Positions 1,862 through 42,214 of a stretch of 64,000 nucleotides of DNA are shown in pieces. Where the stretch lies: NCBI GenBank assembly GCA_965644315.1, contig CBFFRQ010000054.1, forward strand, positions 248,001 through 312,000. The letters run 5' to 3'. The first letter of the stretch is position 1. Each line of letters starts with the position of its first letter. A program made the position numbers and the translations under genes. A model generated the notes under the pieces. The model was not told the origin of the DNA and did not search any database. It saw nothing but the letters and a program-made list of their open reading frames with translations. Source of the DNA: Caecitellus pseudoparvulus (taxonomy: Eukaryota; Protista; Bigyra: Bicosoecida).

Positions 1862-2270
1862 GACAACTGGCTGGTGCTGGTGCGGGCAGTTTGGGCGGCC
1901 GAAGGGCGACCTGCCACGCCCTGGAGATTCAGGCAAGGGGGTCTGGGCAAGGGCACTCGCTGGGTCGTCAGTTGGGTGGGTTTTATTTGCCATTGGCGTG
2001 CACTGAAGCGAAATGTGGGAGATATTCGTACTTGCGGAAATTCGTTTACAGCACCTGTCGGAAGAAAGCACCTGCAACCTGCACCGGGATAGGACCAACA
2101 ACTCGATCCAAGTGCACTAGTCCACACATCACACATAAATTCAATCCCCACCACACCAGCACAGGACGCACGCCTGAGAGAGCCCTCCCCATTTCGCCCG
2201 GCAAAGGCTGGGCGGACCCGCTGCCTGTTTGGTGCTGCTTACGGCACTGCTCTTGCGCCACCACGCCGAC

Positions 2271-4838
2271 ATGGCTGTTGCTGCACCCGCGGAAACGACG
2301 GCAGCAGGGCCACCTGCCAGCGTAGAGGACGGAAAGGACGCACCCATGGCGCCCGCGCGTACATTCTCGGAGTCTTTGGCAGCAGCAGAGGGCGGCGACG
2401 CTCAGGCGGCGTTTTCTGTCGGCTCAGCTTTCCTTACCGGGAGCGACGGCGCGCCGACAGACCCCCTGCGAGCCTGCAAGTTCCTGCACATGGCCATGGA
2501 GGCAGAGGTGGAGGGCGCTGCAGACGCGTTTGAAAAGGCGATGTTGATGGATGCGGGAGATGGGCCGACTGTCGCTGACACGTGGGACTGGCTGGAGGCC
2601 GCTCAGTCCTCGGCCGATGCCAACGCAGCTCTGGCTCTGGCGGCAGTGTACCGCGACGGAGCAGGGGCGTTGCCAGTGGACCCGGAACAAGCCGAGGTGT
2701 TCCTGCGCCTCGCCTCCAAGCACGGCTCAGGGGAAGCGTCTCTCTTGCTGGGGCGAGCTGGGCTGACGCCGCCGCCGCCGGGGGTGCCTGCCTGCAACGT
2801 GTCACCGGCTGACAGCCTGGCCTTCTTCAAACGCGCGTCCGTGTCGCTGGAGCCCGGCATCGCCCGAGCGGCGGCTGTGGACATGGCACACCTCTTCAGC
2901 CGTGGCAACCCGCCCACCGCGCCGGATGGGGAGGAGCTGCCCCCACCAGAGGAGGGCGTGGATGCGGTGGCGGAGCTGGGCCGGGTCCCCGTGGACCCCC
3001 TCCGGGCCGTGCAGTGGGCCCGGGCCGCAGGGGAGCTTGGCGCAGAGCAAGGCGCGGACCTCCTGCGGCAGTGTGAGGAAGCACTGGGGCCGGACCAGGC
3101 TGGCCTGTGGCGGCTGGCGCAGACAGCGACAGGGGGCGGGCAGACGGCACCTGACGCGGCATTCGAGCTGGGCGTCAAGTACTACTTTGGGCGGGGCGTG
3201 CCGAAGGACATGGCGGAGGCGGTGAAGTGGTTTCGTATGGCGGGCAGCGCGGGGCATGTGCGTGCGTGTGGGCAGCTGGGGTTCATCTACGCGTCAGGCA
3301 AGCCCGGCGTGCCGGCGTCTGACGGCGAGGCGTGTGCGTGGATGGAGCAGGCGGCGGTGCTGGGCGACATGAACGCAGCGTACAACCTGGGCCACATGCT
3401 GTCCAACGGGCGTGGGCCGAACGGGGTGGATGGGCCTGGCGCGCTGAAGTGGTTGTCGAAGCCGGCGGCACGAGGCGACGCCAAGTCCATGAACGCCATC
3501 GGGCGCCTGTACCACGCCGGCATCGGCATGGAGCGGGACTGGGTGCAGGCAGCCAAGCACTACGAGGCTGCAGTGGAGGCCGGCCACGACACCGCCGCGT
3601 GGAATTTGAAGGTCATGTACGAGCACGGCGGGCACGGCCTGGAGGCGGACGAGGCGCTGGAGGGCAAGTGGGCCCACGTTGCGGCCAAGCGGGGGTACTC
3701 CTCTGCCATGACCTTCATGGGCGCTGCGTTTGAGAGTGGCACGCACTCCTTCCAGCGCAACGCCCGCGCCTCACGACACTGGTGGTTGAAGGGCGCAGAG
3801 GCGGGAGCATCCTACTGCATGATGCGCGCTGGTCTGATCTATTCCATCGGGGACGGCGGTGTGTGGGACGGTGCTGCTGTGCGCAGGTGGTGGCTTGCAT
3901 TGCAGGAATCTGGCTGCGATGACTCCATAGCCCTGACATACCCAGCCCTTGTCCACCTGCACGGGTATGGCGGCCCGAGGGACGACGCGCAGGGCTATAA
4001 ACTGATGTCGGAGGCGTATGAGCGGTACGGCTGCATCCAGTCGGGATCCTACGCCGCCGTGATGATGTCGGAAGGGCGGGGGACGGAGGCGGACTTTGAC
4101 GGCGCAGTTGCCAAGGCAGTCGAAATCATGGACCGCGCGGCAGCCGATGAGCAGGACGAGCTGCTGGAACTGCACTTTTTGGTGGGCTTGGCCCACTGGC
4201 GAGGTGCCGGCGGCAAGGCGGTGGACGAGGAAGCAGCCCTGGAGTGTTGGCGGCAAGCAGCTGCGTATGGCCAGACTGGCGCCGTGCTGCTCATCGAAGA
4301 GGTCACGGCCACCCGTGACAGCAGCCCCTTTGACGCCAGCGCCATGCTGGAGGCAGGGGAGGCCGCCAATGCCGAGACGCTGTTCCGGCTGGGCCTCAGC
4401 CACATCCTCGGCACAGACGAGGGTGTGGAAGCGAGCTGGCCCGCGGCGTTCCAGTGCATGGTCCGGGCAGCTGACCTGGGCCACCCCCTTGCAGCCTGTG
4501 CCGAGTGCTGGATGCGTGAGGAGCTGCACGGGGGCGCCGTGGACGCTGCCGAGCGGGAAGCAGACCTCATTCGCTCAGCTTCCGAAGCTGGCGTTCCCCT
4601 CGGGCACCTGCACTACGCACGCCTGCTGGGAGCTGGGTGTGGCCAGCAGGAGCCAGACCTGGCACAGGCCATGCGACTCCTGGCACTGGCGAGTGAAGGA
4701 GGGCTGGAGGAGGCAGCCGTGCACAAGGCGCACGACATGGTGGCGTTTTCGTACGGCCGCGAAAGCGACTTGGAGGCGTTGCCAGAGGCCATGCGCCAGG
4801 CAGTGCTGAAGCTGCTGGCAAAGAGCACCGATGAGTAG
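2271..4838 (+). CDS. SEL1-like repeat protein (full-length copy)
   Basis: Multiple SEL1 motifs (AAFELGVKYYFGRGVPKDMAEAVKWFRMA; AYNLGHMLSNGRG; AIGRLYHAGIGMERDWVQAAKHYEAA). First ATG is at 2271. Confidence 0.9.
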   Translation: MAVAAPAETTAAGPPASVEDGKDAPMAPARTFSESLAAAEGGDAQAAFSVGSAFLTGSDGAPTDPLRACKFLHMAMEAEVEGAADAFEKAMLMDAGDGPTVADTWDWLEAAQSSADANAALALAAVYRDGAGALPVDPEQAEVFLRLASKHGSGEASLLLGRAGLTPPPPGVPACNVSPADSLAFFKRASVSLEPGIARAAAVDMAHLFSRGNPPTAPDGEELPPPEEGVDAVAELGRVPVDPLRAVQWARAAGELGAEQGADLLRQCEEALGPDQAGLWRLAQTATGGGQTAPDAAFELGVKYYFGRGVPKDMAEAVKWFRMAGSAGHVRACGQLGFIYASGKPGVPASDGEACAWMEQAAVLGDMNAAYNLGHMLSNGRGPNGVDGPGALKWLSKPAARGDAKSMNAIGRLYHAGIGMERDWVQAAKHYEAAVEAGHDTAAWNLKVMYEHGGHGLEADEALEGKWAHVAAKRGYSSAMTFMGAAFESGTHSFQRNARASRHWWLKGAEAGASYCMMRAGLIYSIGDGGVWDGAAVRRWWLALQESGCDDSIALTYPALVHLHGYGGPRDDAQGYKLMSEAYERYGCIQSGSYAAVMMSEGRGTEADFDGAVAKAVEIMDRAAADEQDELLELHFLVGLAHWRGAGGKAVDEEAALECWRQAAAYGQTGAVLLIEEVTATRDSSPFDASAMLEAGEAANAETLFRLGLSHILGTDEGVEASWPAAFQCMVRAADLGHPLAACAECWMREELHGGAVDAAEREADLIRSASEAGVPLGHLHYARLLGAGCGQQEPDLAQAMRLLALASEGGLEEAAVHKAHDMVAFSYGRESDLEALPEAMRQAVLKLLAKSTDE

Positions 4839-5461
4839 CAAAGGCACCGTGTGCCCCCCCGCATACCCACACAAAGTGGAAGGTGGGGGGGTCATTGCAG
4901 GTGGCAAGAATGCAACCTCCGCTACAGATGTCCGTGTTCATGCAGGCAGCCAAGCCAGGGGGCGGGCAAGTTTGCTTGGCTGGATGGGGGTGACGGGGGG
5001 GGGGGCGTTGGAAAGGGGTGTGGAGTCGTCCGCTAGCGTCGGAAGGCGGCAGAGCTTGGGGTCGGCATCTCGTCGGGTTCCATGTGAGGGGGGGTCGCCG
5101 CGCGGGGTTGGGCGTTGGCCTCCCGAGCAGCTTGGGACGCCATGGTGTGCGGCAAAACGCTGAGATGGCTGGTGGAGGTGCTGGTGAGGTGGGGATGCCT
5201 GGGTGAGGTCAGTCCAGCACGCCTCGGGAGCACAGTGCTTGAGCAAGTTTGCATGGATGGGCGTGAGTGAGCCTTGAAGCAGTGATCTGCAGGTAGGTGT
5301 GGCACTGTCACGACTGTGTCACAACAATCGTCCACGACTTCTTCCTGCATTGGACAGTGAGAAACATCCACACTTGAGATTCCTTTTTTGAGCCGCTTGT
5401 GTAGCTGTGCAGGTGAGGTGTTTGGCGGCAGCACTTGCGCCATCTGCAACCCCACCACGCC

Positions 5462-8400
5462 ATGGCTGATGGCAGGGGCAGTCAGTCGGTGGAGGGGCGA
5501 TGGAAGGCTGCATGTGACGGTGAGCAAGAAGATGTATTGCTGAGCATACTTGAGAGGTGCGGTGGTGGTGCGGGTGTGGGTCTGGGAGGCTTGTCAAGCG
5601 GGGAGACGTCAGCTGGCTTTTTGGTGGCGTGCAAGAAAGGACACGTTGCGCTGCTGCGTGGGCTGTTGGCGTTGGAGGGGGATCTTGTTGTGAACGTGCA
5701 TGCACAAGATGAGGATGGGCCCGAGGCTGGCTTCCGACTTGCCTGTGCGAACGGCCACGTGGATGTGGTACGTGAGCTGCTGGCTCTGACGGGTGATCGA
5801 GCTGTGGATGTGCATGCAGGGGTCAATGGCGACCCTGAGTATGGCTTCTTGCTTGCCTGTGAGAACGGCCACATTGACGTGGTGCGTGAGCTGCTGGCGC
5901 TGAGCGGACATCGAGCCGTGGATGTGCATGCAGGGGTCAAGGGCGACCCTGAGTGGGGCTTCCGTGCTGCCTGTGAGAACGGCCACATTGACGTGGTGCG
6001 TGAGCTGCTGGCGCTGACGGGTGATCGAGCTGTGAATGTGCATGCAGGCTTCAATGGCGACCCTGAGTACGGCTTCCGACTTGCCTGTGTGAACGGGCAC
6101 ATTGATGTGGTGCGTGAGCTGCTGGCGCTGAGCGGACATCGAGCCGTGGATGTGCATGCAGGGGTCAAGGGCGACCCTGAGTACGGCTTCCTGGCTGCCT
6201 GCCAGAACGGCCACATTGACGTGGTGCGTGAGCTGCTGGCTCTGACGGGTGATCGAGCCGTGGATGTGCATGCAGGGGTCAAGGGCGTTCCTGAGTATGG
6301 CTTCCGACTTGCCTGTGCGAACGGCCACATTGACGTGGTGCGTGAGCTGCTGGCTCTGACGGGTGATCGAGCTGTGGATGTGCATGCAGGGGTCAAGGGC
6401 GACCCTGAGTGGGGCTTCCTGGCTGCCTGCCAGAACGGCCACATTGACGTGGTGCGTGAGCTGCTGGCTCTGAGCGGACATCGAGCCGTGGATGTGCATG
6501 CAGGGGTCAAGGGCGACCCTGAGTGGGGCTTCCGTGCTGCCTGTGAGAACGGCCACATTGACGTGGTGCGTGAGCTGCTGGCGCTGACGGGTGATCGAGC
6601 TGTGAATGTGCATGCAGGCTTCAATGGCGACCCTGAGTACGGCTTCCGACTTGCCTGTGTGAACGGGCACATTGATGTGGTGCGTGAGCTGCTGGCGCTG
6701 AGCGGACATCGAGCCGTGGATGTGCATGCAGGGGTCAAGGGCGACCCTGAGTACGGCTTCCTGGCTGCCTGCCAGAACGGCCACATTGACGTGGTGCGTG
6801 AGCTGCTGGCTCTGACGGGTGATCGAGCCGTGGATGTGCATGCAGGGGTCAATGGCGTTCCTGAGTATGGCTTCCGACTTGCCTGTGCGAACGGCCACAT
6901 TGACGTGGTGCGTGAGCTGCTGGCTCTGACGGGTGATCGAGCTGTGGATGTGCATGCAGGGGTCAAGGGCCACCCTGAGTACGGCTTCCGAAAGGCCTGT
7001 GAGAACGGTCACATTGATGTGGTGCGTGAGCTGCTGGCGCTGAGCGGACATCGAGCCGTGGATGTGCATGCAGGGGTCAAGGGCGACCCTGAGTGGGGCT
7101 TCCTGGCTGCCTGCCAGAACGGCCACGTGGATGTGGTGCGTGAGCTGCTGGCACTGACGGGTGATCGAGTCGTGGATGTGCATGTAAGGGTCAATGGCGA
7201 CCCTGAGTACGGCTTCCTGCTTGCCTGTGAGAACGGCCACATTGACGTGGTGCGTGAGCTGCTGGCGCTGACGGGTGATCGAGCTGTGGATGTGCATGCA
7301 GGGGTCAAGGGCCACCCTGAGTGGGGCTTCCGTGCTGCCTGTGAGAACGGCCACATTGACGTGGTGCGTGAGCTGCTGGCGCTGAGCGGACATCGAGCCG
7401 TGGATGTGCATGCAGGGGTCAAGGGCGACCCTGAGTACGGCTTCCTGCTTGCCTGCCAGAACGGCCACATTGACGTGGTGCGTGAGCTGCTGGCGCTGAG
7501 CGGACATCGAGCCGTGGATGTGCATGCAGGGGTCAAGGGCGACCCTGAGTACGGCTTCCGACTTGCCTGTGAGAACGGCCACATTGACGTGGTGCGTGAG
7601 CTGCTGGCGCTGACGGGTGATCGAGCCGTGGATGTGCATGCAGGCTTCAAGGGCGACGTTGAGTACGGCTTCCGAAAGGCCTGTGAGAACGGCCACGTGG
7701 ACGTGGTGCGTGAGCTGCTGGCGCTGAGTGGGCATCGAACCGTGGATGTGCATGCAGGCTTCAATGGCGACCCTGAGTATGGCTTCCGAGCTGCCTGCCA
7801 GAACGGCCACATTGACGTGGTGCGTGAGCTGCTGGCACTGACGGGTGATCGAGCTGTGGATGTCCATGCCGCTTTCAAGGGTAGTCCTGAGGCTGCCTTC
7901 CTGGCTGCCTGTGTGAACGGACACTTTGCTGTTGTGCGTGAGCTGCTGGCGCTGACGGGTGATCGAGTCGTGGATGTGCATGCAGGCTTCAAGGGTGACC
8001 CTGAGTATGGCTTCCGAAAGGCCTGTGAGAACGGCCACATTGACGTGGTGCGGGAGCTGCTGGCTCTGAGCGGACATCGAGCCGTGGATGTGCATGCAGG
8101 GGTCAAGGGCGACCCTGAGTGGGGCTTCCTGGCTGCCTGCCAGAACGGCCACGTGGATGTGGTGCGTGAGCTGCTGGCACTGACGGGTGATCGAGTCGTG
8201 GATGTGCATGTAAGGGTCAATGGCGACCCTGAGTGGGGCTTCCGTGCTGCCTGTGAGAACGGCCACGTGGATGTGGTGCGTGAGCTGCTGGCTCTGACGG
8301 GTGATCGAGCCGTGGATGTGCATGCAGGGGTCAATGGCGACCCTGAGTATGGCTTCCGAGCTGCCTGCCGGCACGGCCACGTGGAGGTGGTGCGCGAGCT

Positions 8401-8626
8401 GCTGGCTCTGACGGGTGGTCGAGTCATCTCACTGCAATCATGCCTTGAGGCTGGAGAGTTGGCTAGGCAGGCAGCCAGAGATGCCGTTTGGCTCGGCACC
8501 AGCACTCGGCAGGGTCGCATGGCCATGATACTGCTACGGAGCGCAAAGAGGGCAAGGAAGCGTCCACGGCCACAGACCGGCGCAGCGTTGGTGTCTTCAT
8601 CAGGGAAGGCTGCACGCTCTGACTGA
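5462..8626 (+). CDS. Capped 38-aa atypical ankyrin-repeat protein, ANK-A (24 repeats, 1054 aa)
   Basis: 87-aa N-cap, 23 full repeats E[YWA]GF[RL][LAK]AC[AEVQ]NGHIDVVRELLAL[ST]G[HD]RAVDVHAG[VF][KN]GDP, then a terminal repeat and C-cap DAVWLGTSTRQGRMAMILLR. ACxxGHxDVVRELL matches the ankyrin core AAxxGHxxIVxxLL. Confidence 0.9.
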   Translation: MADGRGSQSVEGRWKAACDGEQEDVLLSILERCGGGAGVGLGGLSSGETSAGFLVACKKGHVALLRGLLALEGDLVVNVHAQDEDGPEAGFRLACANGHVDVVRELLALTGDRAVDVHAGVNGDPEYGFLLACENGHIDVVRELLALSGHRAVDVHAGVKGDPEWGFRAACENGHIDVVRELLALTGDRAVNVHAGFNGDPEYGFRLACVNGHIDVVRELLALSGHRAVDVHAGVKGDPEYGFLAACQNGHIDVVRELLALTGDRAVDVHAGVKGVPEYGFRLACANGHIDVVRELLALTGDRAVDVHAGVKGDPEWGFLAACQNGHIDVVRELLALSGHRAVDVHAGVKGDPEWGFRAACENGHIDVVRELLALTGDRAVNVHAGFNGDPEYGFRLACVNGHIDVVRELLALSGHRAVDVHAGVKGDPEYGFLAACQNGHIDVVRELLALTGDRAVDVHAGVNGVPEYGFRLACANGHIDVVRELLALTGDRAVDVHAGVKGHPEYGFRKACENGHIDVVRELLALSGHRAVDVHAGVKGDPEWGFLAACQNGHVDVVRELLALTGDRVVDVHVRVNGDPEYGFLLACENGHIDVVRELLALTGDRAVDVHAGVKGHPEWGFRAACENGHIDVVRELLALSGHRAVDVHAGVKGDPEYGFLLACQNGHIDVVRELLALSGHRAVDVHAGVKGDPEYGFRLACENGHIDVVRELLALTGDRAVDVHAGFKGDVEYGFRKACENGHVDVVRELLALSGHRTVDVHAGFNGDPEYGFRAACQNGHIDVVRELLALTGDRAVDVHAAFKGSPEAAFLAACVNGHFAVVRELLALTGDRVVDVHAGFKGDPEYGFRKACENGHIDVVRELLALSGHRAVDVHAGVKGDPEWGFLAACQNGHVDVVRELLALTGDRVVDVHVRVNGDPEWGFRAACENGHVDVVRELLALTGDRAVDVHAGVNGDPEYGFRAACRHGHVEVVRELLALTGGRVISLQSCLEAGELARQAARDAVWLGTSTRQGRMAMILLRSAKRARKRPRPQTGAALVSSSGKAARSD
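5723..8422 (+). repeat. Coding tandem array of 114-bp units (24 units)
   Basis: Unit starts at GAG 5723 and recurs every 114 bp to 8345. Confidence 0.95.
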
Positions 8627-9075
8627 AGGGCAGAGTAGGTGTGGGCTCCACGCTCCACCGCGCAGGTTGCCAAGGCCATTGCCAGGCTCTGGGGTGACCA
8701 ACGTGCGTAAGCTAGATAATGCACGTGAGCCTTGCATGGTTGGGGGCGTTGGCCTGGAAGCCATCCCAAGGATGCGCAACATCTGCACCGACAGCGTGGC
8801 AGGTCCGTGGCGAACTGGCGAGGCTGTGGAAGGTCATGCTGGTCTTGTGATCATCTGCGCATCACCCTTGCAGCAGTGAACAGGCGACGGGCAAGTTTTC
8901 CGCTAGGGGCGACGCGTTTGCACTTTGCTCGGGGCAGTGGCATACATGGGGAGGTTCAGAGTCAAGGCAGCAGCAGCTCCCCTGCTCGCTCAAGCGGAGG
9001 CAAAAGAACCGGGTGGAAGACTTCCAGGGGACGCGGACAATGCATTGCGAGGGGATTCCGGGAAAGACTTGGGTC

Positions 9076-9457
9076 TCAGCGCTCAGACGTGGTGGGGGGC
9101 TCCTCGCCCTCGTCGCCGCCCTGCCGCCCCGACAGCAGGCGCACGTTGAGGAAGTCCCGTGTCTTGGCCACCTTCACCGCCCCTTCGCGCTGCTTGCGCT
9201 GGGCCAGGTCGTCCGCCAGCATGACCCGCAGGAGGTCACTCATGGTGACGACGCCCAGGACGGTGCGGCTGTCTCCAACGACGGCCAGGTGGCGCAAGCC
9301 CTTGCTGAGCATGTACTCGGCAGCCCGTGCCAGGGTCCAGGATGGCCGCCCGCACTTGACGGGGCGGACATGGCATCTGTGATGGGGGTGGTGGTGGCGT
9401 CGGGTCATACCTGAGCCGCGCGTGAAGCGGCCAGGCACCGCAGCAGGGTCAGGCCTG
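9076..9457 (-). pseudogene. Remnant of CBS-domain gene (3' end plus a 52-bp 5' piece; internal ~1.19-kb deletion and 1-bp frameshift)
   Basis: C-terminal VKCGRP...TTSER is identical to 16181 onward. GACGGGGCGG here versus GACGGGGGCGG at ~16463 shifts the frame. The sequence jumps from the equivalent of 16512 to 17702. Confidence 0.85.
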
Positions 9458-9461
9458 CACC

Positions 9462-11501
9462 GTGTCACTGGCTAACAGCCTGGCCTTCTTCAAACGCGCG
9501 TCCGTGTCGCTGGAGCCCGGCATCGCCCGAGCGGCGGCTGTGGACATGGCACACCTCTTCAGCCGTGGCAACCCGCCCACCGCGCCGGATGGGGAGGAGC
9601 TGCCCCCACCAGAGGAGGGCGTGGATGCGGTGGCGGAGCTGGGCCGGGTCCCCGTGGACCCCCTCCGTGCCGTGCAGTGGGCCCGGGCCGCAGGGGAGCT
9701 TGGCGCAGAGCAAGGCGCGGACCTCCTGCGGCAGTGTGAGGAGGCACTGGGGCCGGATCAGGCTGGCCTGTGGCGGCTGGCGCAGACAGCGACAGGGGGC
9801 GGGCAGACGGCACCTGACGCGGCATTCGAGCTGGGCGTCAAGTACTACTTTGGGCGGGGCGTGCCGAAGGACATGGCGGAGGCGGTGAAGTGGTTTCGTA
9901 TGGCGGGCAGTGCGGGGCATGTGCGGGCGTGTGGGCAGCTGGGGTTCATCTACGCGTCAGGCAAGCCTGGCGTGCCGGCGTCTGACGGCGAGGCGTGTGC
10001 GTGGATGGAGCAGGCGGCGGTGCTGGGCGACATGAACGCAGCGTACAACCTGGGCCACATGCTGTCCAACGGGCGTGGGCCGAACGGTGTGGATGGGCCT
10101 GGCGCGCTGAAGTGGTTGTCGAAGCCGGCGGCACGCGGTGACGCCAAGTCCATGAACGCCATCGGGCGCCTGTACCACGCCGGCATCGGCATGGAGCGGG
10201 ACTGGGTGCAGGCAGCCAAGCACTACGAGGCTGCAGTGGAGGCTGGCCACGACACCGCCGCGTGGAATTTGAAGATCATGTACGAGCACGGCGGGCACGG
10301 CCTGGAGGCGGACGAGGCGCTGGAGGGCAAGTGGGCCCACGTTGCGGCCAAGCGGGGGTACTCCTCTGCCATGACCTTCATGGGCGCTGCGTTTGAGAGT
10401 GGCACGCACTCCTTCCAGCGCAACGCCCGCGCCTCACGACACTGGTGGTTGAAGGGCGCAGAGGCGGGAGCATCCTACTGCATGATGCGCGCTGGTTTGA
10501 TCTATTCCATCGGGGACGGCGGTGTGTGGGACGGTGCTGCTGTGCGCAGGTGGTGGCTTGCATTGCAGGAATCTGGCTGCGATGACTCCATAGCCCTGAC
10601 ATACCCAGCCCTTGTTCACCTGCACGGGTATGGCGGCCCGAGGGACGACGCGCAGGGCTTTAGACTGATGTCGGAGGCGTATGAGCGGTACGGCTGCATC
10701 CAGTCGGGATCCTACGCCGCCGTGATGATGTCGGAAGGGCGGGGGACGGAGGCGGACTTTGACGGCGCAGTTGCCAAGGCAGCCGAAATCATGGACCGCG
10801 CGGCAGCCGATGAGCAGGACGAGCTGCTGGAACTGCACGTTTTGGTGGGCTTGGCATACTGGCGAGGTGCCGGCGGCAAGGCGGTGGACGAGGAAGCTGC
10901 CCTGGAGTGTTGGCGGCAAGCAGCTGCATATGGCCAGACTGGCGCCGTGCTGCTCATCGAAGAGGTCACGGCCACCCGTGACAGCAGCCCCTTTGACGCC
11001 AGCGCCATGCTGGAGGCAGGGGAGGATGCCAATGCCGAGACGCTGTTCCGGCTGGGCCTCAGTCACATCCTCGGCACAGACGAGGGTGTGGAAGCGAGCT
11101 GGCCCGCGGCGTTCCAGTGCATGGTCCGGGCAGCTGACCTGGGCCACCCCCTTGCAGCCTGTGCCGAGTGCTGGATGCGTGAGGAGCTGCACGGGGGCGC
11201 CGTGGACGCTGCCGAGCGGGAAGCAGACCTCATTCGCTCAGCTTCCGAAGCTGGCGTTCCCCTCGGGCACCTGCACTACGCACGCCTGCTGGGAGCTGGG
11301 TGTGGCCAGCAGGAGCCAGACCTGGCACAGGCCATGCGACTCCTGGCACTGGCGAGCGAAGGAGGGTTGGAGGAGGCAGCCGTGCACAAGGCGCACGACA
11401 TGGTGGCGTTTTCGTACGGCCGCGAAAGCGACTTGGAGGCGTTGCCAGAGGCCATGCGCCAGGCAGTGCTGAAGCTGCTGGCAAAGAGCACCGATGAGTA
11501 G
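9462..11501 (+). CDS. 5'-truncated SEL1-repeat gene copy (open frame; first ATG 9546; gene or pseudogene)
   Basis: About 30 substitutions over ~2 kb versus 2799-4838 (manual count). No stops. Lacks roughly the first 173 codons and the native upstream region. Confidence 0.75.
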   Translation: MSLANSLAFFKRASVSLEPGIARAAAVDMAHLFSRGNPPTAPDGEELPPPEEGVDAVAELGRVPVDPLRAVQWARAAGELGAEQGADLLRQCEEALGPDQAGLWRLAQTATGGGQTAPDAAFELGVKYYFGRGVPKDMAEAVKWFRMAGSAGHVRACGQLGFIYASGKPGVPASDGEACAWMEQAAVLGDMNAAYNLGHMLSNGRGPNGVDGPGALKWLSKPAARGDAKSMNAIGRLYHAGIGMERDWVQAAKHYEAAVEAGHDTAAWNLKIMYEHGGHGLEADEALEGKWAHVAAKRGYSSAMTFMGAAFESGTHSFQRNARASRHWWLKGAEAGASYCMMRAGLIYSIGDGGVWDGAAVRRWWLALQESGCDDSIALTYPALVHLHGYGGPRDDAQGFRLMSEAYERYGCIQSGSYAAVMMSEGRGTEADFDGAVAKAAEIMDRAAADEQDELLELHVLVGLAYWRGAGGKAVDEEAALECWRQAAAYGQTGAVLLIEEVTATRDSSPFDASAMLEAGEDANAETLFRLGLSHILGTDEGVEASWPAAFQCMVRAADLGHPLAACAECWMREELHGGAVDAAEREADLIRSASEAGVPLGHLHYARLLGAGCGQQEPDLAQAMRLLALASEGGLEEAAVHKAHDMVAFSYGRESDLEALPEAMRQAVLKLLAKSTDE

Positions 11502-12124
11502 CAAAGGCACCGTGTGCCCCCCCGCATACCCACACAAAGTGGAAGGTGGGGGGGTCATTGCAGGTGGCAAGAATGCAACCTCCGCTACAGAAGTTGGTGT
11601 TCATGCAGGCAGCCAAGCCAGGGGGCGGGCAAGTTTGCTTGGCTGGATGGGGGTGACGGGGGGGGGGGCGTTGGAAAGGGGTGTGGAGTCGTCCGCTAGC
11701 GTCGGAAGGCGGCAGAGCTTGAGGTCTGTACCTCGTCGGGTTCCATGTGAGGGGGGGTCGCCGCGCGGGGTAGGGTGTTGGCCTCCCGAGCAGCTTGGGA
11801 CGCCATAGTGTGCGGCGAAACGTTGATATCGCAGATGAAGGTGCTGGTGAGGTGGGGATGCCAGGGTGAGGTCAGTCCAGCACGCCTCGGGAGCACAGTG
11901 CTTGAGCAAGTCTGCATGGATGGGCGTGAGCGAGCCAGGCAGCAGTAATCCGCAGGCAGGTGGGACACTGTCACGACTGTGTCAAAACTATCGTCCACGA
12001 CTTCTTCCTGCATTGGACAGTGAGAAACATCCACACTTGAGATTCCTTTTTTGAGCCGCTTGTGTAGCTGTGCAGGTGAGGTGTTTGGCGGCAGCACTTG
12101 CGCCATCTGCAACCCCACCACGCC

Positions 12125-15100
12125 ATGGCTGATGGCAGGGGCAGTCAGTCGGTGGAGGGGCGATGGAAGGCTGCATGTGATGGCGAGCAGGTAGATGTAT
12201 TGCTGAGCATGCTTGAGAAGTGCGGTGGTGGTGCGGGTGCGGGTCTGGGAGGCTTGTCAAGCGAGGACATATCAGCTGGCTTTTTGGTTGCGTGCAAGAA
12301 AGGACACGTTGCGCTGCTGCGTGGGCTGCTGGCGTTGGATGGGGGTCTTGCTGTGGACGTGCACGCGGAAGACCAGCACGGGGCCGAGGCTGGCTTCCGG
12401 CTTGCTTGCATGACTGGTAACATTGACGTGGTGCGTGAGCTGCTGGCCTTGACCGGGCATCGTGAGGTGAATGTGCATGCTGGTCCAGAGGGCCGGCCTG
12501 AGGCTGGCTTCCGACTTGCCTGTGAGAATGGGCACATTGATGTGGTGCGTGAGCTGCTGGCGCTGAGCGGACACCGCGAGGTGGATGTGCATGCTGGGTC
12601 TGAGGGCAGGCCTGAGTTCGGCTTCGCGCTTGCCTGTCAGAATGGGCATGTTGATGTGGTGCGGGAGCTGCTATCGCTGAGCGGACACCGCGAGGTGGAT
12701 GTGCATGCTAGACCTGAGAGTAGGCCTGAGGCTGGCTTCGGGCTTGCCTGTCAGGAAGGGCACATTAACGTGGTGCGTGAGCTTCTGGCGCTGAGCGGAC
12801 ACCGCGAGGTGGACGTGCATGCTGCTTTCAGGGGTGATCCTGAGTTCGGCTTTCGAGTTGCCTGTGAGTTCGGGCACATTGACGTGGTGCGGGAGCTGCT
12901 GGCATTGAGCGGGCACCGCGAGGTGGACGTACACGCTGGGAATGAGGATGGGCTTGAGGCTGGCTTCCTGGTTGCCTGTCAGGAAGGGCACATTGATGTA
13001 GTGCGTGAGCTGCTGGCATTGAGCGGGCACCGCGAGGTGGACGTACATGCTGCTTTCAGGGGTGATCCTGAGTTCGGCTTTCGAGCTGCCTGTCACGAAG
13101 GGCACATTGACGTGGTGCGGGAGCTGCTGGCTTTGACTGGGCACCGCGAGGTAGATGTGCATGCTGCTTTCAGGGGTGGTCCTGAGGCTGGCTTCCTGGT
13201 TGCCTGTCAGGAAGGGCACATTGACGTGGTGCGGGAGCTGCTGGCATTGAGCGGGCATCGAGAGGTGGACGTACACGCTGGGAATGAGGATGGGCTTGAG
13301 TATGGCTTTCGAGCTGCCTGTCGTTTCGGGCACATTGATGTAGTGCGTGAGCTGCTGGCATTGAGCGGGCACCGCGAGGTGGACGTACATGCTGGGGATC
13401 AGGATGGGCCAGAGGCTGGCTTCCGAGTTGCCTGTCAGGAAGGGCACATTGACGTGGTGCGGGAGCTGCTGGCTTTGACTGGGCACCGCGAGGTAGATGT
13501 GCATGCTGCTTTCAGGGGTGGTCCTGAGGCTGGCTTCCTGGTTGCCTGTCATTTCGGGCACATTGACGTGGTGCGGGAGCTGCTGGCTTTGACTGGGCAC
13601 CGCGAGGTGGACGTACACGCTGGGAATGAGGATGGGCTTGAGTATGGCTTTCGAGCTGCCTGTCAGGAAGGGCACATTGATGTAGTGCGTGAGCTGCTGG
13701 CATTGAGCGGGCATCGTGAGGTTGAGGTGCAAGCTGGGAATCAGGATGGGCCAGAGGCTGGCTTCCGAGTTGCCTGTCAGGAAGGGCACATTGACGTGGT
13801 GCGGGAGCTGCTGGCTTTGACTGGGCACCGCGAGGTAGATGTGCATGCTGCTTTCAGGGGTGGTCCTGAGGCTGGCTTCCTGGTTGCCTGTCATTTCGGG
13901 CACATTGACGTGGTGCGTGAGCTGCTGTCGCTGACGGGTGATCGCGAGGTGGACGTACACGCTGGGAATGAGGATGGGCTTGAGTATGGCTTTCGAGCTG
14001 CCTGTCAGGAAGGGCACATTGATGTAGTGCGTGAGCTGCTGGCATTGAGCGGGCATCGTGAGGTTGAGGTGCAAGCTGGGGATCAGGATGGGCCAGAGGC
14101 TGGCTTCCGAGTTGCCTGTCAGGAAGGGCACATTGACGTGGTGCGGGAGCTGCTGGCTTTGACTGGGCACCGCGAGGTAGATGTGCATGCTGCTTTCAGG
14201 GGTGGTCCTGAGGCTGGCTTCCTGGTTGCCTGTCATTTCGGGCACGTTGACGTGGTGCGTGAGCTGCTGTCGCTGACGGGTGATCGAGAGGTGGACGTAC
14301 ACGCTGGGAATGAGGATGGGCTTGAGTATGGCTTCCGAGCTGCCTGTCAGGAAGGGCACATTGACGTGGTGCGTGAGCTGCTGTCGCTGACGGGTGATCG
14401 CGAGGTGGAAGTGCATGTTGGGGACCAGTACGGGCCTGAGCAAGGTTTCCGAGTTGCCTGTGCGAATGGCCACGTGGATGTGGTGCGTGAGCTGCTGGCA
14501 CTAACGGGGCATCGTGAGGTGAATGTGCATGCTGGGGATGAGGATGGGCCAGAGGCTGGCTTCCGACTTGCCTGTCGTTTTGGGCACGTTGACGTGGTGC
14601 GTGAGCTGCTGGCTTTGACCGGGCATCGAGAGGTGGACGTGCATGCTGGGGATGAGGATGGGCCTGAGGCTGGCTTCCGAGTTGCCTGTCAGGAAGGGCA
14701 CATTGACGTGGTGCGTGAGCTGCTGGCATTGAGTGGGTGTCGTGAGGTGAATGTCCGTGCAGCTCTCAAGGGTGATCCAGAGAGTATCCTCCAACATGCA
14801 TGCCGGAAAGGGCACATTGACATGGTGCGTGAGCTGCTGGCGTTGACGGGTGACCGTGCTTTGGACGTGCATGCTCCGGACAATTTGGGGCCTGAGGGTG
14901 CCTTTCGAGCTGCCTGTCAGGAAGGGCACATTGACGTGGTGCGGGAGCTGTTGGCTTTGAGCGGACACCGCGAGGTGGACGTGCATGCTGGGGACCTGTA
15001 TGGGCTTGAACAAGGTTTCCGAGTTGCCTGTCAGGAAGGGCACATTGACGTGGTGCGTGAGCTGCTGGCTTTGACTGGGCATCGCGAAGTTGATGTGCAT

Positions 15101-15664
15101 GCTGCGTTCATGGGAGTTCCTGAGCAAGGCTTCCGGATTGCTTGTGTGAGAGGCCACGTGGATGTGGTGCGTGAGCTGCTGGCACTGACGGGGCATCGTG
15201 AGGTGAATGTACATGTGGGATTTGACGAGAGGCCTGAAGCCGGCTTTTGGGCCGCCTGCCAGAAAGGACACGTGGGTGTGCTGCAGGAGCTCCTGGCGTT
15301 GACCGGGCATCGTGAGGTGGACGTACATGTTGATGGGGAGTACGGCTTTCGAGCTGCCTGTGAGAATGGCCATATTGTTGTAGTGCGGGAGCTGCTGGCT
15401 TTGAGTGGTGCTCGTGAGGTGGACGTGCACGCTGCGTTGGACGGTGTTCCTGAGGCTGGCTTCTGGCTTGCCTGCAGGAACGGGCATGTGGAGGTGGTCC
15501 GTGAACTGCTGGGGCTCACAGGTCATCGAGCCATTCCCCTCTTGGTCAGAGTTGCCGCTGAAGAGGTGGCTGTGCAGCCTGCCAAGGATGCCGTTTGGAT
15601 CGGCACCAGCACTCGGCAGGGTCGCATGGCCATGCTGCTGCTGCGGAGCGCAAGGAGAGAGTAG
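12125..15664 (+). CDS. Capped 38-aa atypical ankyrin-repeat protein, ANK-B (28 repeats, 1179 aa)
   Basis: Homologous 87-aa N-cap. Repeats are ExGFxxACxxGHIDVVRELLAL[ST]GHREVDVHAxxxxxx, one of them 34 aa. C-cap DAVWIGTSTRQGRMAMLLLR. Confidence 0.9.
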   Translation: MADGRGSQSVEGRWKAACDGEQVDVLLSMLEKCGGGAGAGLGGLSSEDISAGFLVACKKGHVALLRGLLALDGGLAVDVHAEDQHGAEAGFRLACMTGNIDVVRELLALTGHREVNVHAGPEGRPEAGFRLACENGHIDVVRELLALSGHREVDVHAGSEGRPEFGFALACQNGHVDVVRELLSLSGHREVDVHARPESRPEAGFGLACQEGHINVVRELLALSGHREVDVHAAFRGDPEFGFRVACEFGHIDVVRELLALSGHREVDVHAGNEDGLEAGFLVACQEGHIDVVRELLALSGHREVDVHAAFRGDPEFGFRAACHEGHIDVVRELLALTGHREVDVHAAFRGGPEAGFLVACQEGHIDVVRELLALSGHREVDVHAGNEDGLEYGFRAACRFGHIDVVRELLALSGHREVDVHAGDQDGPEAGFRVACQEGHIDVVRELLALTGHREVDVHAAFRGGPEAGFLVACHFGHIDVVRELLALTGHREVDVHAGNEDGLEYGFRAACQEGHIDVVRELLALSGHREVEVQAGNQDGPEAGFRVACQEGHIDVVRELLALTGHREVDVHAAFRGGPEAGFLVACHFGHIDVVRELLSLTGDREVDVHAGNEDGLEYGFRAACQEGHIDVVRELLALSGHREVEVQAGDQDGPEAGFRVACQEGHIDVVRELLALTGHREVDVHAAFRGGPEAGFLVACHFGHVDVVRELLSLTGDREVDVHAGNEDGLEYGFRAACQEGHIDVVRELLSLTGDREVEVHVGDQYGPEQGFRVACANGHVDVVRELLALTGHREVNVHAGDEDGPEAGFRLACRFGHVDVVRELLALTGHREVDVHAGDEDGPEAGFRVACQEGHIDVVRELLALSGCREVNVRAALKGDPESILQHACRKGHIDMVRELLALTGDRALDVHAPDNLGPEGAFRAACQEGHIDVVRELLALSGHREVDVHAGDLYGLEQGFRVACQEGHIDVVRELLALTGHREVDVHAAFMGVPEQGFRIACVRGHVDVVRELLALTGHREVNVHVGFDERPEAGFWAACQKGHVGVLQELLALTGHREVDVHVDGEYGFRAACENGHIVVVRELLALSGAREVDVHAALDGVPEAGFWLACRNGHVEVVRELLGLTGHRAIPLLVRVAAEEVAVQPAKDAVWIGTSTRQGRMAMLLLRSARRE
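12386..15529 (+). repeat. Coding tandem array of 114-bp units (28 units, one of 102 bp)
   Basis: Unit starts at GAG 12386. A 342-bp super-period is also visible as recurring antisense ORFs at 12828/13170/13512/13854/14196. Confidence 0.95.
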
Positions 15665-16180
15665 GCATGGCCTCGGCCACAGACCGGCCCAGCATAGATG
15701 TCACTAGCAGGGAAGGATCCACGCACTGATAAGTGGCGGGGGAGAGGTGGGCTCTGCCCTGGACCATTCACACAGCCACAACCACGGTCAGGTTGGGGAT
15801 GACCAGCGTGTGTGAGCCAGGGAATGCATCTGAGTTGCGTATCGTCGGGAGCTGCCAGTTGAGTGCGAGCACGGGGATGCGCAACGTCTGCAACCACAGC
15901 GTGGCAGGTCCGTGGCGAGCTGGCGAGGCTGTGGAAGGTCATGCGGGTCTTGTGATCATCTGCACATCACCCATACGGCAGCGAGCAGACGACGGGCAAG
16001 TTTTCCGCTAGGGGCCACGCGTTTGCATTTTGCTCGGGGCAGTGGCATACATGGGGAGGTTCAGAGTCAAGGCAGCAGCAGCTCCCCTGCCCGCCCAAGC
16101 GGAGGCAAAAGAACTTGGCGAAAGACTTCCAGGGGACGCGGACAATGCATTGCGAGGGGATTCCGGGAAAGACTTGGGTC

Positions 16181-17750
16181 TCAGCGCTCAGACGTGGTGG
16201 GGGGCTCCTCGCCCTCGTCGCCGCCCTGCCGCCCCGACAGCAGGCGCACGTTGAGGAAGTCCCGTGTCTTGGCCACCTTCACCGCCCCTTCGCGCTGCTT
16301 GCGCTGGGCCAGGTCGTCTGCCAGCATGACCCGCAGGAGGTCACTCATGGTGACGACGCCGAGGACGGTGCGGCTGTCTCCAACGACGGCCAGGTGGCGC
16401 AAGCCCTTGCTGAGCATGTACTCGGCAGCCCGGGCCAGGGTCCAGGAGGGCCGCCCGCACTTGACGGGGGCGGACATGGCGTCTGTGATGGGGGTGGTGG
16501 TGGCGTCGGGTCCGGTGGCTGTGGCGCCGTCGCCCCCCGCGCCGCCCTCCCCTGCCACCAGGCGCCACAGGATGTCCCGGCTGGTGAGGATGCCCACTGG
16601 CTTGCTGCCCTCCACCACGAGCAAGGACATGATGCCGGCTTCGGCCATCTCGTTGGCGGCGTCGGCCACCGTGACGTCATCGCCCACGTCTGCGTTCAGG
16701 AGGAGCTTCTTTCCAGCTGCATGCTGCCACTCCAGCACGTCTTCCAGGTCCTTCGTGAAGGCGGCGTGTGGCTGTGGCAGGGACTCGTCTGGCGTTTCGG
16801 CAGTGGAGCCCTCCTCGCCGTCTACCACGTCCCCCTTGCCGGCGGACGCGCCTGCCTCCAAAGCAGCGACGCGAGCCGCGTCCTCTTCCTGCAAGACACG
16901 CAGGACGTGCTGCAGCAGTGTGCGGATGGAGACGACGGCTGAGATGGAGGCGGCAGGCAGGTCATCGCCGGGGGGCGCTTCAGATTCCGCAGCAGCGTCC
17001 CCTGCGCCGCCATGCAGCACGGGGAATGACTCCTGGCCTAGCACAGGCATGTGCCGCACTTTGTGTGTCAGCATCCACTCGATGGCACTGCGCAGGCAGG
17101 GAGCGGCGGGCTGAGTGAGCGAGCGCCAGCGGCAATGCAGCCGTGCCGACGCACTCCAACACTGGCGTGTCCACGCTGCAGGAAACGAGCTTGGGGGTCA
17201 TGATGGATGAGGCGACGATGTCGGAGGGACAGAAGGCGCCGTGGTCCAGGTTCATGATGTAGTCCTTTTCCGACAGCAGGCCCTTCACCTTGTCCTCTGT
17301 GACGCACGAGCGTGGCCAGGAGGGAGTGTGGTCTGGTAATACCCTGTTGAGCTCAACGCCAGGGCCAGCGCATCCGACCCCTGTGCAGGCCACCTGCCGC
17401 CAGGCTCACGCACCAGCCGTCACAAGGATGCTCCCCACTTGTCCACTCTTCATCATGCGGATGGCTTCAGGCACAGGCGTCTGGGTCGGGTAGCAGCGCC
17501 GCGGATTGCGGTCGGCATGCGGAATTGGGACAACACGCATCACTCACGTCCACGAGGCAGCTGTGCACCGTCTTTGCCCGGCTGGCCTGCTCATCCTGCA
17601 GCACATCTCGCAAAGTACTGTCAGACACTGGCACCTGCGGCGAAGGCAGGTCTCATGGTGCTTCGCGGTGCACTGTCGAGGGGTAGAGCAGAGCACCTGC
17701 ACATACCTGAGCAGCGCGTGAAGCGTGCAGGCATCGCAGCAGAGTCAGGC
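16181..17750 (-). CDS. CBS-domain protein (two CBS pairs), multi-exon; start uncertain
   Basis: AIRMMKSGQVGSILV; KVKGLLSEKDY...IMTPKLVSCSVDTPVL; intron 17088-17154 joins VLD-AIEWM; TVADAANEMAEAGIMSLLVV...VGILTSRDIL; GLRHLAVV...LGVVTMSDLL. Confidence 0.8.
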
Positions 17751-29700: not shown

Positions 29701-30413
29701 GGTAGGACTGTGTGTGTGAGCGCTGTGCGGTGGTGCGCGTCGCCGTGTGCCCCACGCACCGTGGAGAAGTACAGCATGAATATGAAAAACGCGCGCACCA
29801 GCCCCTCCGCTGCGCCGAAGGCCTTGCCGTCGATGACCAGCGCCTTCAGGCGCCGCTGAGCGCGCCGACACCGCCCTGCCCACGAACTATCGGGCCTGCC
29901 CTGGAATGTGTGCCGTGTAGGCTGGTGGGCGCGGCGAGCGGCTTCGAGCAGGCGCTCGGCGCTTGCGACCAGCGCTGACTCGGTGCGCTGCACGTCGGAC
30001 ATGGTGCGCACGCTGGCAGCCGCGGTGAGGGTAGGCGGCTCGTACGGTGCGCGCAGGGCGGGGGCCGGCACAGCCTCGGCACTGCGCTTGCCCTCTCTGG
30101 CCGGCGCGTCGGCAGGGTGCACTGCGCCAGACCGGCTAGCGCCAGCGCCGAAGGGAGTGACGGGCACGACGCCTTCCTCGTCAGACTCCGAGCTGCTGCA
30201 TGAAGAGGAATCAGGGGGGAGGTCTTCCAGGTCCAGGGACTGCCAGCCCAGGCGGGGAGACAGCTCGATGCCGCTGCCCTCAGCTCCTGTCGCGGATGCT
30301 GTTGGGACAGAAACGCCCTCTGCATCTGTGGCCCCTGCTGCTGCGCCAGAGAGAGCCCGTTCGCTTTGCGCCCCCCCAGGCGATGGACCTTCACAAGTTC
30401 CCTCGGAGGACAT
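26770..30413 (-). CDS. Second voltage-gated K+ channel-like subunit (intron 29689-29759)
   Basis: S4 LRILRALRMFKFTRY; WWAIVTLTTVGYGDITP; FTLPPAVI. The N-terminal exon from ATG 30413 splices FST to FSVMSET. Confidence 0.85.
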
Positions 30414-30966: not shown

Positions 30967-32058
30967 ATGCAGCCTCGGGAACGCGGCGAGGTGGCAGCCG
31001 CCCAGGCCCGGGACAGAAACGCCATGGAGCGGTACCTTGCACAGGCTACGCTGCGCCTTTTGGAGGGAATAGACAGGAGGGCACATGGGGCTCGCCACGA
31101 AACGTCAGGAAGGCGCTCCACACGGGGCCGACGGCGGATCGGCACGCCCCTGGTGACACTGCGTGGGCCAGCGGTGGACTCTGCTGGGTTGGCGCGTGAG
31201 GTGGCGGCGGCGCGCAGTCAGGCCCACGCCAGCTCGCGACCCAGCCAGCCACCCCCCAGCCCACACCAAGCAGACGACGGGCCACAGTACAGCGCCAGTG
31301 TGACCCACAAGCGGGGTGCATTTGGGGACGGCGCACCAGCTCGCACCGCCGCGCCCGGCCCCCGGCTCGCCGCCACACAGCATGAGGGCGTTTCTCTGGC
31401 CGCCGCCGCGCCACCGCTGTCTCGCACGGCCGTCCCGAAGCTGTCTGCTTTCGACGCATCGCGTTTCCAGGCGGCGCTGGCCCGCCTGGCGTCGGAGCGT
31501 CCTGCTGCGTTTCACCGCGAGGACCTGAGAGGCTGGCCTGCCTCCGGGCGGGTGGCCACGCCGGTGGAAACGCAGCAGGTATTGACACCTGACTCCCCTC
31601 GCAGTCAGTTTATGGCGAGCACTCTGCCGGTGTGCGGTGGAGAGGGGGCCGTGCCAGCGCCTGCTGGGTCAGAGGGGGGTGGGGGGGGGCTGGAGGCACT
31701 GCGGGCGAGTGGGCCCATGGTGGTGGTGTCACCGACCGAGTGGGGGACAGGCGTGGGCCCACCCCCCGCGACATGCGCCCACTCCCCCCCACGCCCCAGC
31801 CGGACTCACCGCCCCCCCTCCCGCGGCATTCGTTCCAGCACTGCTGCCAGCTGGGCCAGCCTCACCGGCGTACACCCCTCCAGCGGCGGAGGCGGTGACA
31901 GCAGACCAGGCGTGCCTGCTTCACGCCGGGCGCCGCAAACCGCCACTGAGCGACTGAGCTTGCAGCAGGGGCGGGGCGCGGCGGCGCTACGAAGGTCACA
32001 CCCCGCCGTGGACAGCACCCGCCGTGATGCGTTTCTCCGGCGAGGCAGTGGGTGGTAG
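30967..32058 (+). CDS. Hypothetical low-complexity protein
   Basis: Long ORF with ATG in CCACCATG context. It sits head-to-head with the channel gene and fills the gap before the ankyrin gene. No recognisable domain. Confidence 0.45.
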   Translation: MQPRERGEVAAAQARDRNAMERYLAQATLRLLEGIDRRAHGARHETSGRRSTRGRRRIGTPLVTLRGPAVDSAGLAREVAAARSQAHASSRPSQPPPSPHQADDGPQYSASVTHKRGAFGDGAPARTAAPGPRLAATQHEGVSLAAAAPPLSRTAVPKLSAFDASRFQAALARLASERPAAFHREDLRGWPASGRVATPVETQQVLTPDSPRSQFMASTLPVCGGEGAVPAPAGSEGGGGGLEALRASGPMVVVSPTEWGTGVGPPPATCAHSPPRPSRTHRPPSRGIRSSTAASWASLTGVHPSSGGGGDSRPGVPASRRAPQTATERLSLQQGRGAAALRRSHPAVDSTRRDAFLRRGSGW

Positions 32059-41416: not shown

Positions 41417-42214
41417 ATGGCAGATGACAGCGATAGCCAGTCAGTGGTGGGTCGATGGCGGGCAGCGTTTGATTCTTTCGAGCCGGAAGTCTTGCTGAGC
41501 ATACTGTCTGAGTGTGGCGATGGTGCTGGTCTGGAGCTGAGAGGAGTGTCAAGCAAGGAGACAACGGCTGGGTTTTGGCTTGCTTGCAGGCTGGGTCACC
41601 TTGAATTGCTTGACAAGATGCTGGCCTTGGAGGGGGGCCTTGCAGTGGACGTACATGCAGAAGATGAGGATGGGCCTGAGGTTGGATTCCTGGTTGCCTG
41701 TGAGCACGGCCACATTAGTGTGGTGCGCGAGCTGCTGGCTTTGACCGGGCATCGTGAAGTGAATGTGCACGCAGGAGATTGGCGTGGGCCTGAGGTTGGC
41801 TTCCAGGTTGCCTGTCGATTTGGCCACATTGACGTGGTGCGGGAACTGCTGGCGCTAACAGGTGACCGTGAAGTTGATGTGCATGCTGTGTCTGAGGCTG
41901 GCTTCCGAGCTGCTTGTGAGGAGGGTCACACTGATGTAGTGCGTGAGCTGCTGGGCTTGACGGGGCATCGTGAGGTGGATGTGCATGCTGGTTTTCGAGG
42001 TGTTCCTGAGTACGGCTTCCGATTTGCCTGTAAGAATGGCCACGTGGGTGTGCTGGTGGAGTTGCTGGGCCTCACTGGCCGTCGAGCCATTCCGCTGCAG
42101 ACACGCCTTGAGGCAGGAGAGGCATCTGTACAGCCGGCCAAGGACGCTGTCTGGGCTGGCACCAGCACGCGGCAAGGTCGGAAAGCCATGCTGTTGCTAC
42201 GAGCAGCTCAGTGA
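41417..42214 (+). CDS. Capped 38-aa atypical ankyrin-repeat protein, ANK-C (4 repeats, 265 aa)
   Basis: Homologous 87-aa N-cap (MADDSDSQSVVGRW...), 4 repeats (one 34 aa) and C-cap DAVWAGTSTRQGRKAMLLLR. Same CCACCACGCC-ATGG start context as ANK-A and ANK-B. Confidence 0.88.
   Translation: MADDSDSQSVVGRWRAAFDSFEPEVLLSILSECGDGAGLELRGVSSKETTAGFWLACRLGHLELLDKMLALEGGLAVDVHAEDEDGPEVGFLVACEHGHISVVRELLALTGHREVNVHAGDWRGPEVGFQVACRFGHIDVVRELLALTGDREVDVHAVSEAGFRAACEEGHTDVVRELLGLTGHREVDVHAGFRGVPEYGFRFACKNGHVGVLVELLGLTGRRAIPLQTRLEAGEASVQPAKDAVWAGTSTRQGRKAMLLLRAAQ

Follow-up and report, generated by a model that had tools for sequence, protein, structure and literature searches.

A large family of capped 38-residue ankyrin arrays with hypervariable inner-helix and hairpin positions in the bicosoecid Caecitellus pseudoparvulus

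Three capped repeat genes at the locus

The window analysed here is a stretch of 64,000 nucleotides (nt) from the bicosoecid Caecitellus pseudoparvulus (positions 248001-312000 of contig C54; assembly of 30.6 Mb in 215 contigs, GC content ~65%), and the family to which three of its genes belong was surveyed in this window together with 42 loci of the genome. These genes, designated A, B and C, encode proteins in which a common N-terminal cap (N-cap) of 87 amino acids (aa) and a common C-terminal cap (C-cap) enclose 24, 28 and 4 tandem units of 38 aa, respectively, just as an initial annotation made from the sequence alone had described (Table 1). The unit register was anchored on the AC..GH core, behind the N-cap and ahead of the DAVWxGTSTRQGR..LLLR cap. 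In gene A the units follow the N-cap at an exact 38-aa spacing, and the final unit merges into the C-cap. Tandem Repeats Finder (TRF) scored a 114-nt period at 3733 for gene A (23.6 copies) and at 2635 for gene B, and it found an extra higher-order period of 342 nt (three units) in the latter. For gene C, an exact-protein look-up gave no identical record.

Immediately before the start codon, the three genes and their paralogues have conserved bases (CACCACGCCATGGC; window positions 5590-5625, 12253-12288 and 41380-41420), and several metagenomic open reading frame (ORF) calls read through this conserved upstream region as ..HHAMAD... The arrays are overlapped by long antisense ORFs, the largest of 923 aa; as both the Pfam matches and the selection pattern back the forward frame, these ORFs most likely result from the scarcity of stops in GC-rich repeats.

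Table 1. Coordinates of the capped ankyrin-array genes and of other features in the window
Feature	Position	Strand	Description	Basis
Gene A	5462..8626	+	capped ankyrin-array protein, 1054 aa	translation, unit register, Pfam, TRF
Gene A, N-cap	5462-5722	+		
Gene A, array	5723-8458	+	24 units	
Gene A, C-cap and basic tail	8459-8623	+		
Gene A, stop codon	8624-8626	+		
Gene B	12125..15664	+	capped ankyrin-array protein, 1179 aa	translation, unit register, Pfam, TRF
Gene B, N-cap	12125-12385	+		
Gene B, array	12386-15565	+	28 units (one of 34 aa)	
Gene B, C-cap	15566-15661	+		
Gene C	41417..42214	+	short solitary member, 265 aa	translation, unit register, Pfam, AF2 model
Gene C, N-cap	41417-41677	+		
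Gene C, array	41678-42121	+	4 units (one of 34 aa)	
Gene C, C-cap	42122-42211	+		
Segmental duplication, unit 1	2790..9452	+	3' part of Sel1-repeat gene, intergenic region, gene A, ~0.8 kb downstream	
Segmental duplication, unit 2	9453..16480 (right end approximate)	+	5'-truncated Sel1-repeat copy, intergenic region, gene B, downstream region	
Sel1-repeat gene	2229-4838		869-aa ORF just upstream of gene A	Sel1, E 2e-37
Sel1-repeat copy	9462-11501		679-aa ORF just upstream of gene B, 5'-truncated	99% identity to the 2229-4838 gene
Antisense ORF over array A	5482-8769	-		
Antisense ORF over array B	12671-15526	-		
Ion channel gene	24065-26755	+	Ion_trans and EF-hand	
Ion channel gene	26770-29883	-	Ion_trans	
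Ion channel gene	34140-36107	+	Ion_trans and cyclic-nucleotide-binding domain	
Canonical ankyrin gene	31996-33312	-	438 aa, outside the 38-aa family	Ank_2, E 4e-19
TmcB-type ORF	51707-56815	-	1702 aa, TmcB-type TPR region, weak PAS match	E 1e-23 (TPR region)

Fold and domain identity

All three proteins matched the Pfam model Ank_2 above its curated cut-off of 27.3 bits (A, E 1.2e-80, 266.6 bits; B, E 5.9e-94, 309.2 bits; C, E 1e-16, 61.7 bits). Using phmmer, gene C was aligned to human ankyrin-1, NOMPC and designed ankyrin repeat proteins (DARPins), with G-F-x-x-A-C-x-x-G-H falling on (P)-L-H-L-A-A-x-x-G-H and four additional residues following helix 2. This insertion is the main source of the 5-aa excess over the 33-aa ankyrin repeat that the initial annotation had noted, and its reading that TPLH is replaced by xGFx was likewise seen in the alignment to human ankyrin-1, where unit positions 3 and 6 stand in place of T and H. 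By the same alignment, positions 10-11 correspond to the two residues before GH that are randomised in DARPins, which had also been recognised from the sequence. A length of 33 aa and a TPLH motif are typical of the ankyrin superfamily but not needed for membership; the present unit has 38 aa and x-G-F-x.

An AlphaFold2 (AF2) model of gene C, computed with 15 paralogues as input, reached a predicted local distance difference test (pLDDT) score of 81.7 and a predicted template modelling (pTM) score of 0.82, with two helices and a bridge in each unit. Foldseek searches with this model retrieved DARPins and FEM1B at a probability of 1.00, and ankyrin solenoids of the atlas superposed on residues 2-263 with TM-scores of 0.6-0.72. 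Since the superposition covers nearly the whole protein, the caps would be degenerate capping repeats of one solenoid rather than a separate domain. As modelled, each protein is thus one continuous ankyrin solenoid, in which nearly identical units of 38 aa stand between a degenerate N-terminal cap and a C-terminal cap peculiar to the family. The earlier suggestion of a new kind of repeat did not hold, given that the proteins are ordinary ankyrins by Pfam and that the whole molecule, caps included, superposes on ankyrin solenoids.

The absence of a catalytic domain and of a transmembrane segment was confirmed: no domain other than ankyrin scored meaningfully above its Pfam cut-off in A, B or C, no F-box or PRANC match was found in them at E < 0.01, and none contains a hydrophobic segment (Kyte-Doolittle maximum of 1.47 over 19 residues). 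The proteins are acidic, with net charges of -42 (A), -86 (B) and -14 (C) and pI values of 5.2-5.7, and judged from their sequences the family members are probably cytosolic and soluble.

A fixed scaffold with variable sites on one face

Entropy was profiled on a set of 240 unique units, taken from the window and from 30 paralogous loci. A8, C9, G12 and L21 are invariant, and F5, L20, L23, G25, V29, V31 and H32 nearly so; A8 and part of the scaffold are set by the anchor pattern, while C9, on which the pattern placed no constraint, is found in 240/240 units. Entropy is high, at 2.1-3.3 bits, for unit positions 3, 6, 7, 10, 11, 35, 36 and 38. Both the invariant scaffold and the places of change claimed at the outset (there numbered residues 2, 5-6 and 9-10 plus the inter-repeat loop) were therefore recovered. 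The outer helix 2 is conserved, and the variation is kept to one contiguous face instead of extending to every exposed position.

In the AF2 model of gene C, helix 1 corresponds to unit positions 3-11 and the hairpin to positions 35-38, with the variable positions 35, 36 and 38 at its tip. The variable helix positions 3, 6, 7, 10 and 11 follow an i, i+3, i+4, i+7, i+8 spacing and thus form one face of the inner helix. According to this model, the variable sites are those of the canonical binding groove by which ankyrin proteins and DARPins hold their partners. Among 371 units, 272 distinct five-residue combinations occur on the helix face and 86 dipeptides at positions 10-11, with the polar or aromatic residues N, Q, E, R, Y, W and H being frequent at the variable positions. 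The fold and the site of variation point to protein binding.

Family size and array turnover

A genome-wide count of members, as proposed in the initial annotation, revealed a large lineage-specific ankyrin family of at least 81 genes. Gene C as the query retrieved at least 264 matching segments, and the first 50 residues of the N-cap, which are free of ankyrin sequence, matched 81 places, 77 of them without stops. The N-cap-bearing ORFs span 157-1867 aa, or ~3 to ~45 units, and the genes are spread over ~25 contigs, including head-to-tail arrays of two to seven genes in twelve 10-kb stretches. Outside this genome, the only sources of two-cap proteins were marine metagenome assemblies, with identities of 50-67%. 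The 44-aa C-cap had 9 matches among 1.84 billion representatives; five of these are among the ankyrin relatives found here, the rest being short fragments or a weak match, and by sequence all 9 apparently belong to the same family.

Genes A and B lie in two copies of a segmental duplication. Positions 2790-5700 and 9453-12360, which run from the 3' part of a Sel1-repeat gene across the intergenic region into the N-cap, are 96-100% identical, and the ~0.8 kb downstream of the two genes are 94% identical at the protein-frame level, whereas the arrays of 24 and 28 units are only ~75% identical. A third copy on contig C157 (locus L038) has flanks of 95-99% and an array of 88-93% identity, with ~19 units and different unit types at matching ordinal positions. 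This copy could be either a haplotig or a paralogue, so that the comparison of 24, 28 and ~19 units is one between paralogues or haplotigs, not proven alleles. Within gene A, units 3-6 and 8-11 are 99-100% identical at the nucleotide level and represent an internal block duplication, and units 10, 13 and 16 of gene B are identical to one another. The mean aa identity between units is 0.81 in gene A and 0.73 in gene B, and units are more alike within genes (0.76) than between them (0.70). Near-identical flanks around diverged arrays that contain identical blocks imply that the arrays change through block duplication, unit shuffling and exchange, at a pace well above that of the surrounding DNA.

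The third copy of the Sel1-repeat gene on contig C157 is 97.5% identical. A functional link between Sel1 and ankyrin genes was considered and rejected, as the pairing occurs only in the three copies of this one segmental duplication and the other 11 of the 10-kb stretches surveyed have ankyrin arrays without Sel1. One metagenomic protein (P0029) joins Sel1 repeats to this ankyrin repeat type.

Selection on scaffold and variable sites

The ratio of nonsynonymous to synonymous substitution rates (dN/dS, omega) was estimated by NG86 counting. Comparison of all pairs of units was uninformative because synonymous sites are saturated (proportion of synonymous differences, pS, 0.55), and pairs picked on scaffold similarity were dropped, as this ascertainment inflates omega. 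Disjoint pairs of nearest neighbours, selected over the whole unit, had an omega of 0.8-1.1 for the eight variable sites and of 0.08 in the scaffold. For context-defined pairs, which are set by the two neighbouring units only and hence are independent of the scored unit, the variable-site omega was 1.69 (95% confidence interval 1.15-2.55) and 1.42 (1.10-1.85) in two ranges, with scaffold values of 0.07-0.09; in two smaller ranges the variable-site intervals span 1 and the scaffold is at 0.16-0.21. Seven independent pairs of four-unit paralogues yielded 1.07 at the variable sites, 0.27 in the scaffold and 0.31-0.34 in the caps.

The scaffold is clearly under strong purifying selection (omega 0.07-0.27), and positive selection on the groove is suggested, not established, as the variable sites range from 0.8 to 1.7 across the designs. 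The statement in the initial annotation that the family is under diversification is accordingly borne out weakly, with values of 1.4-1.7 in one design speaking for it and 0.8-1.1 in two designs against it.

Relatives in giant viruses

A giant-virus metagenome-assembled genome, GVMAG-S-1103017-74 (IMG/VR), encodes a 395-aa protein that is up to 58% identical in its best segment and has the same ELLALTGDRxVDVHA scaffold, running from helix 2 to the hairpin, in units of 34 aa without the family caps. The protein P0007, from a sequence labelled as viral metagenome, is 46% identical and resembles the former in having this motif and no family caps; its contig is GC-rich (79.5 kb as examined, up to 179 kb on record) and contains several ankyrin genes. 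The nearest feature and shape clusters of the atlas are mostly ankyrins of Nucleocytoviricota. The viral genes are thus multi-copy on GC-rich contigs and share the motif with the protist family, but their units are 33-35 aa long and lack both the N-terminal 50 aa and the DAVWxGTSTRQGR cap. An F-box or PRANC-like end was detected in neither the protist nor the viral group. The sequences fit a gene exchange between the host lineage and its viruses.

Ankyrin genes with ELLALTGDRxVDVHA on GC-rich giant-virus contigs were noted at L052 723-1910 and L053 3001-3885 (GVMAG-S-1103017-74), and the contigs carrying P0007 (L032 and L033; 79.5 kb in ENA and 42 kb in JGI) have several ankyrin genes with the same loop motif.

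Other genes of the window

Tubulin, voltage-type ion channels, an ABC transporter and the splicing factor SF3a60 (best named relatives 35-50% identical) are encoded in the window as long unbroken ORFs, indicating an intron-poor eukaryote. The DNA of the window was matched by marine metagenome runs in a sequencing-run search. Three ion channel genes form one neighbourhood, and two further ORFs encode canonical ankyrin repeats and a TmcB-type TPR region, respectively (Table 1).

Discussion

The closest described kind of protein is the hypervariable ANK sensor domain of fungal NOD-like receptors (NLRs). In the ANK domains of these signal transduction ATPases with numerous domains (STAND), internal repeats are highly conserved, repeat numbers differ through recombination between repeats, and about five positions per repeat, located on the inner helix and the hairpin of the concave face, are variable or positively selected; such highly conserved ANK domains, as well as TPR and WD sensor domains, show repeat-number polymorphism and concerted evolution (Dyrka et al. 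2014, PMC4986451). Conserved ANK repeats that combine hypervariable concave sites with a variable repeat number are already known from fungal NLRs (PMC4986451), and the protist family shares with them its internal conservation, its variation in unit number and the location of its variable sites. Unlike fungal NLRs, it has no NACHT, NB-ARC or N-terminal effector domain in the three window genes or in the genome-wide searches, in which NB-ARC gave 0 matches and NACHT 6 weak ones, none of them fused to an array. As a nucleotide-binding oligomerisation domain (NOD) is lacking, the family is therefore not one of NLRs. It further differs in consisting of stand-alone cap-array-cap proteins with a 38-aa unit, xGFx in place of TPLH, at least 81 genes and up to ~45 units.

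A P-loop ORF on contig C62 (frame 1, ~1400-3294 of locus L049, G000:C62:7982-11275; 801-aa open frame with GPAGCGKT and a weak NACHT match of 26.4 bits) was considered as a family fusion and rejected, as it is a separate gene directly downstream of a member. In the lists compared, no kinase match shared its frame with a family member.

DARPins, the best structural matches, resemble the family in their arrangement of cap, identical internal repeats and cap and in the variation of the two residues before GH and of hairpin positions; however, they are man-made, with 33-aa units, 2-3 internal repeats and TPLH retained, whereas the natural protist family also varies the equivalents of T and H and the next residue. 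The 24-repeat membrane-binding domain of animal ankyrin and the 29-repeat spring of NOMPC, which are the best sequence matches in the PDB, are likewise long unbroken solenoids of 24-29 units, but their repeats are individually diverged, conserved between species and joined to other domains, with no multigene repertoire. Viral ANK/F-box (PRANC) host-range factors differ by their C-terminal F-box/PRANC, in place of which the present proteins carry a C-cap that matches its own family only.

We consider it moderately probable that this large lineage-specific ankyrin family, with its fixed scaffold and hypervariable groove, is a recognition repertoire. The genome would then encode a germline set of protein-binding modules with many specificities, in which each long array may provide an extended and individually patterned binding groove, with a mode of action possibly like that of the ANK sensors of fungal NLRs. 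Since no NOD or effector domain is attached, any signal would have to pass via the caps or separate partners. The most likely use would be the recognition or sequestration of variable cytosolic protein targets, for instance in conflicts with giant viruses or other biotic partners. The recognition system proposed in the initial annotation is thus upheld in its cap-[variable repeats]n-cap organisation, in the placement of variation on the predicted binding surface and in the fast array turnover, while a role directed at virus, prey or self stays conjectural.

Several observations weigh against a recognition repertoire. The variable-site omega is ~1 in two of the three designs, NG86 counting is rough on a GC-rich, codon-biased and recombining family, and full relaxation at exposed positions would produce the same picture. 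The surface exposure of the variable sites follows from secondary structure and homology, not from coordinates. To our knowledge, conservation is lowest at the surface positions in every ankyrin family. Neither Pfam in the three window proteins nor the genome-wide NACHT and NB-ARC searches revealed an attached signalling or effector domain. The sequencing-run search matched no RNA run to the locus; when 5901 letters were compared with four runs, contigs of relatives or paralogues from two seawater runs piled up on the repeat part (41576-42166), from which no conclusion on transcription can be drawn because the runs are labelled metatranscriptomic but flagged as probably DNA.

The main rival explanation, which we regard as rather unlikely, is neutral amplification, whereby ordinary structural or adaptor ankyrins would have grown in tandem by unequal crossing-over, with unconstrained variable sites, no repertoire function and many copies redundant or decaying. 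The values near 1 from the nearest-neighbour pairs (0.8-1.1) and the four-repeat paralogues (1.07), the very recent block duplications, which represent mechanical array growth, and the lack of a matching RNA run agree with it. On the other hand, decaying copies are not what the N-cap frames suggest, 77 of the 81 being intact with ORFs of up to 1867 aa, and a scaffold omega of 0.07-0.27 implies that the proteins are maintained. Unconstrained drift also fits poorly with variation that is confined to one contiguous binding face beside a conserved helix 2, and with the context-defined pairs, whose omega of 1.4-1.7 has confidence intervals above 1.

A more specific version of the recognition repertoire, which we view as doubtful, is that the family is a natural DARPin-like germline intracellular set of at least 81 genes, reshuffled by recombination, which, lacking the NOD switch of plant, animal and fungal NLRs, would sense variable proteins of giant viruses or of other biotic partners or neutralise them, and that giant viruses captured relatives of it as counter-measures. 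It is quite improbable that the genes instead came from, or were exchanged with, Nucleocytoviricota and act as captured viral host-manipulation factors or host decoys and not as a general repertoire. The 58% identity and common scaffold of the GVMAG-S-1103017-74 protein, the 46% identity of P0007 on a contig with several ankyrin genes and the predominance of Nucleocytoviricota ankyrins in the nearest atlas clusters would be expected from such an origin; however, the viral proteins have 33-35-aa units without the N-terminal 50 aa and the C-cap, and the protist genes lie among cellular ones (tubulin, ion channels, ABC transporter, SF3a60) and extend over ~25 contigs.

In TALE, PUF and PPR proteins, a small alphabet of specificity residues lets each repeat read one monomer, and the surface that binds the polymer is basic. 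A repeat-coded polymer binder of this type, with each unit reading one nucleic-acid or glycan monomer, had also been raised in the initial annotation and is very improbable: long near-identical arrays with few variable residues per unit, often polar or aromatic, recall such a code, but the standard ankyrin solenoid is a protein-binding fold, and the acidity of the arrays (net charge -14 to -86, pI 5.2-5.7), together with 272 combinations and 86 dipeptides in 371 units, which is no small alphabet, disfavours a nucleic-acid code.

If the family is a recognition repertoire, a unicellular eukaryote beyond fungi, plants and animals would have built a large diversified recognition set on an ankyrin scaffold without NLR architecture, and its members would offer ankyrin scaffolds of natural origin that combine a 38-aa unit with an extended variable groove. 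Should the amplification prove neutral, the family would still illustrate clearly how rapidly arrays can turn over, being reshuffled between flanks that remain identical.

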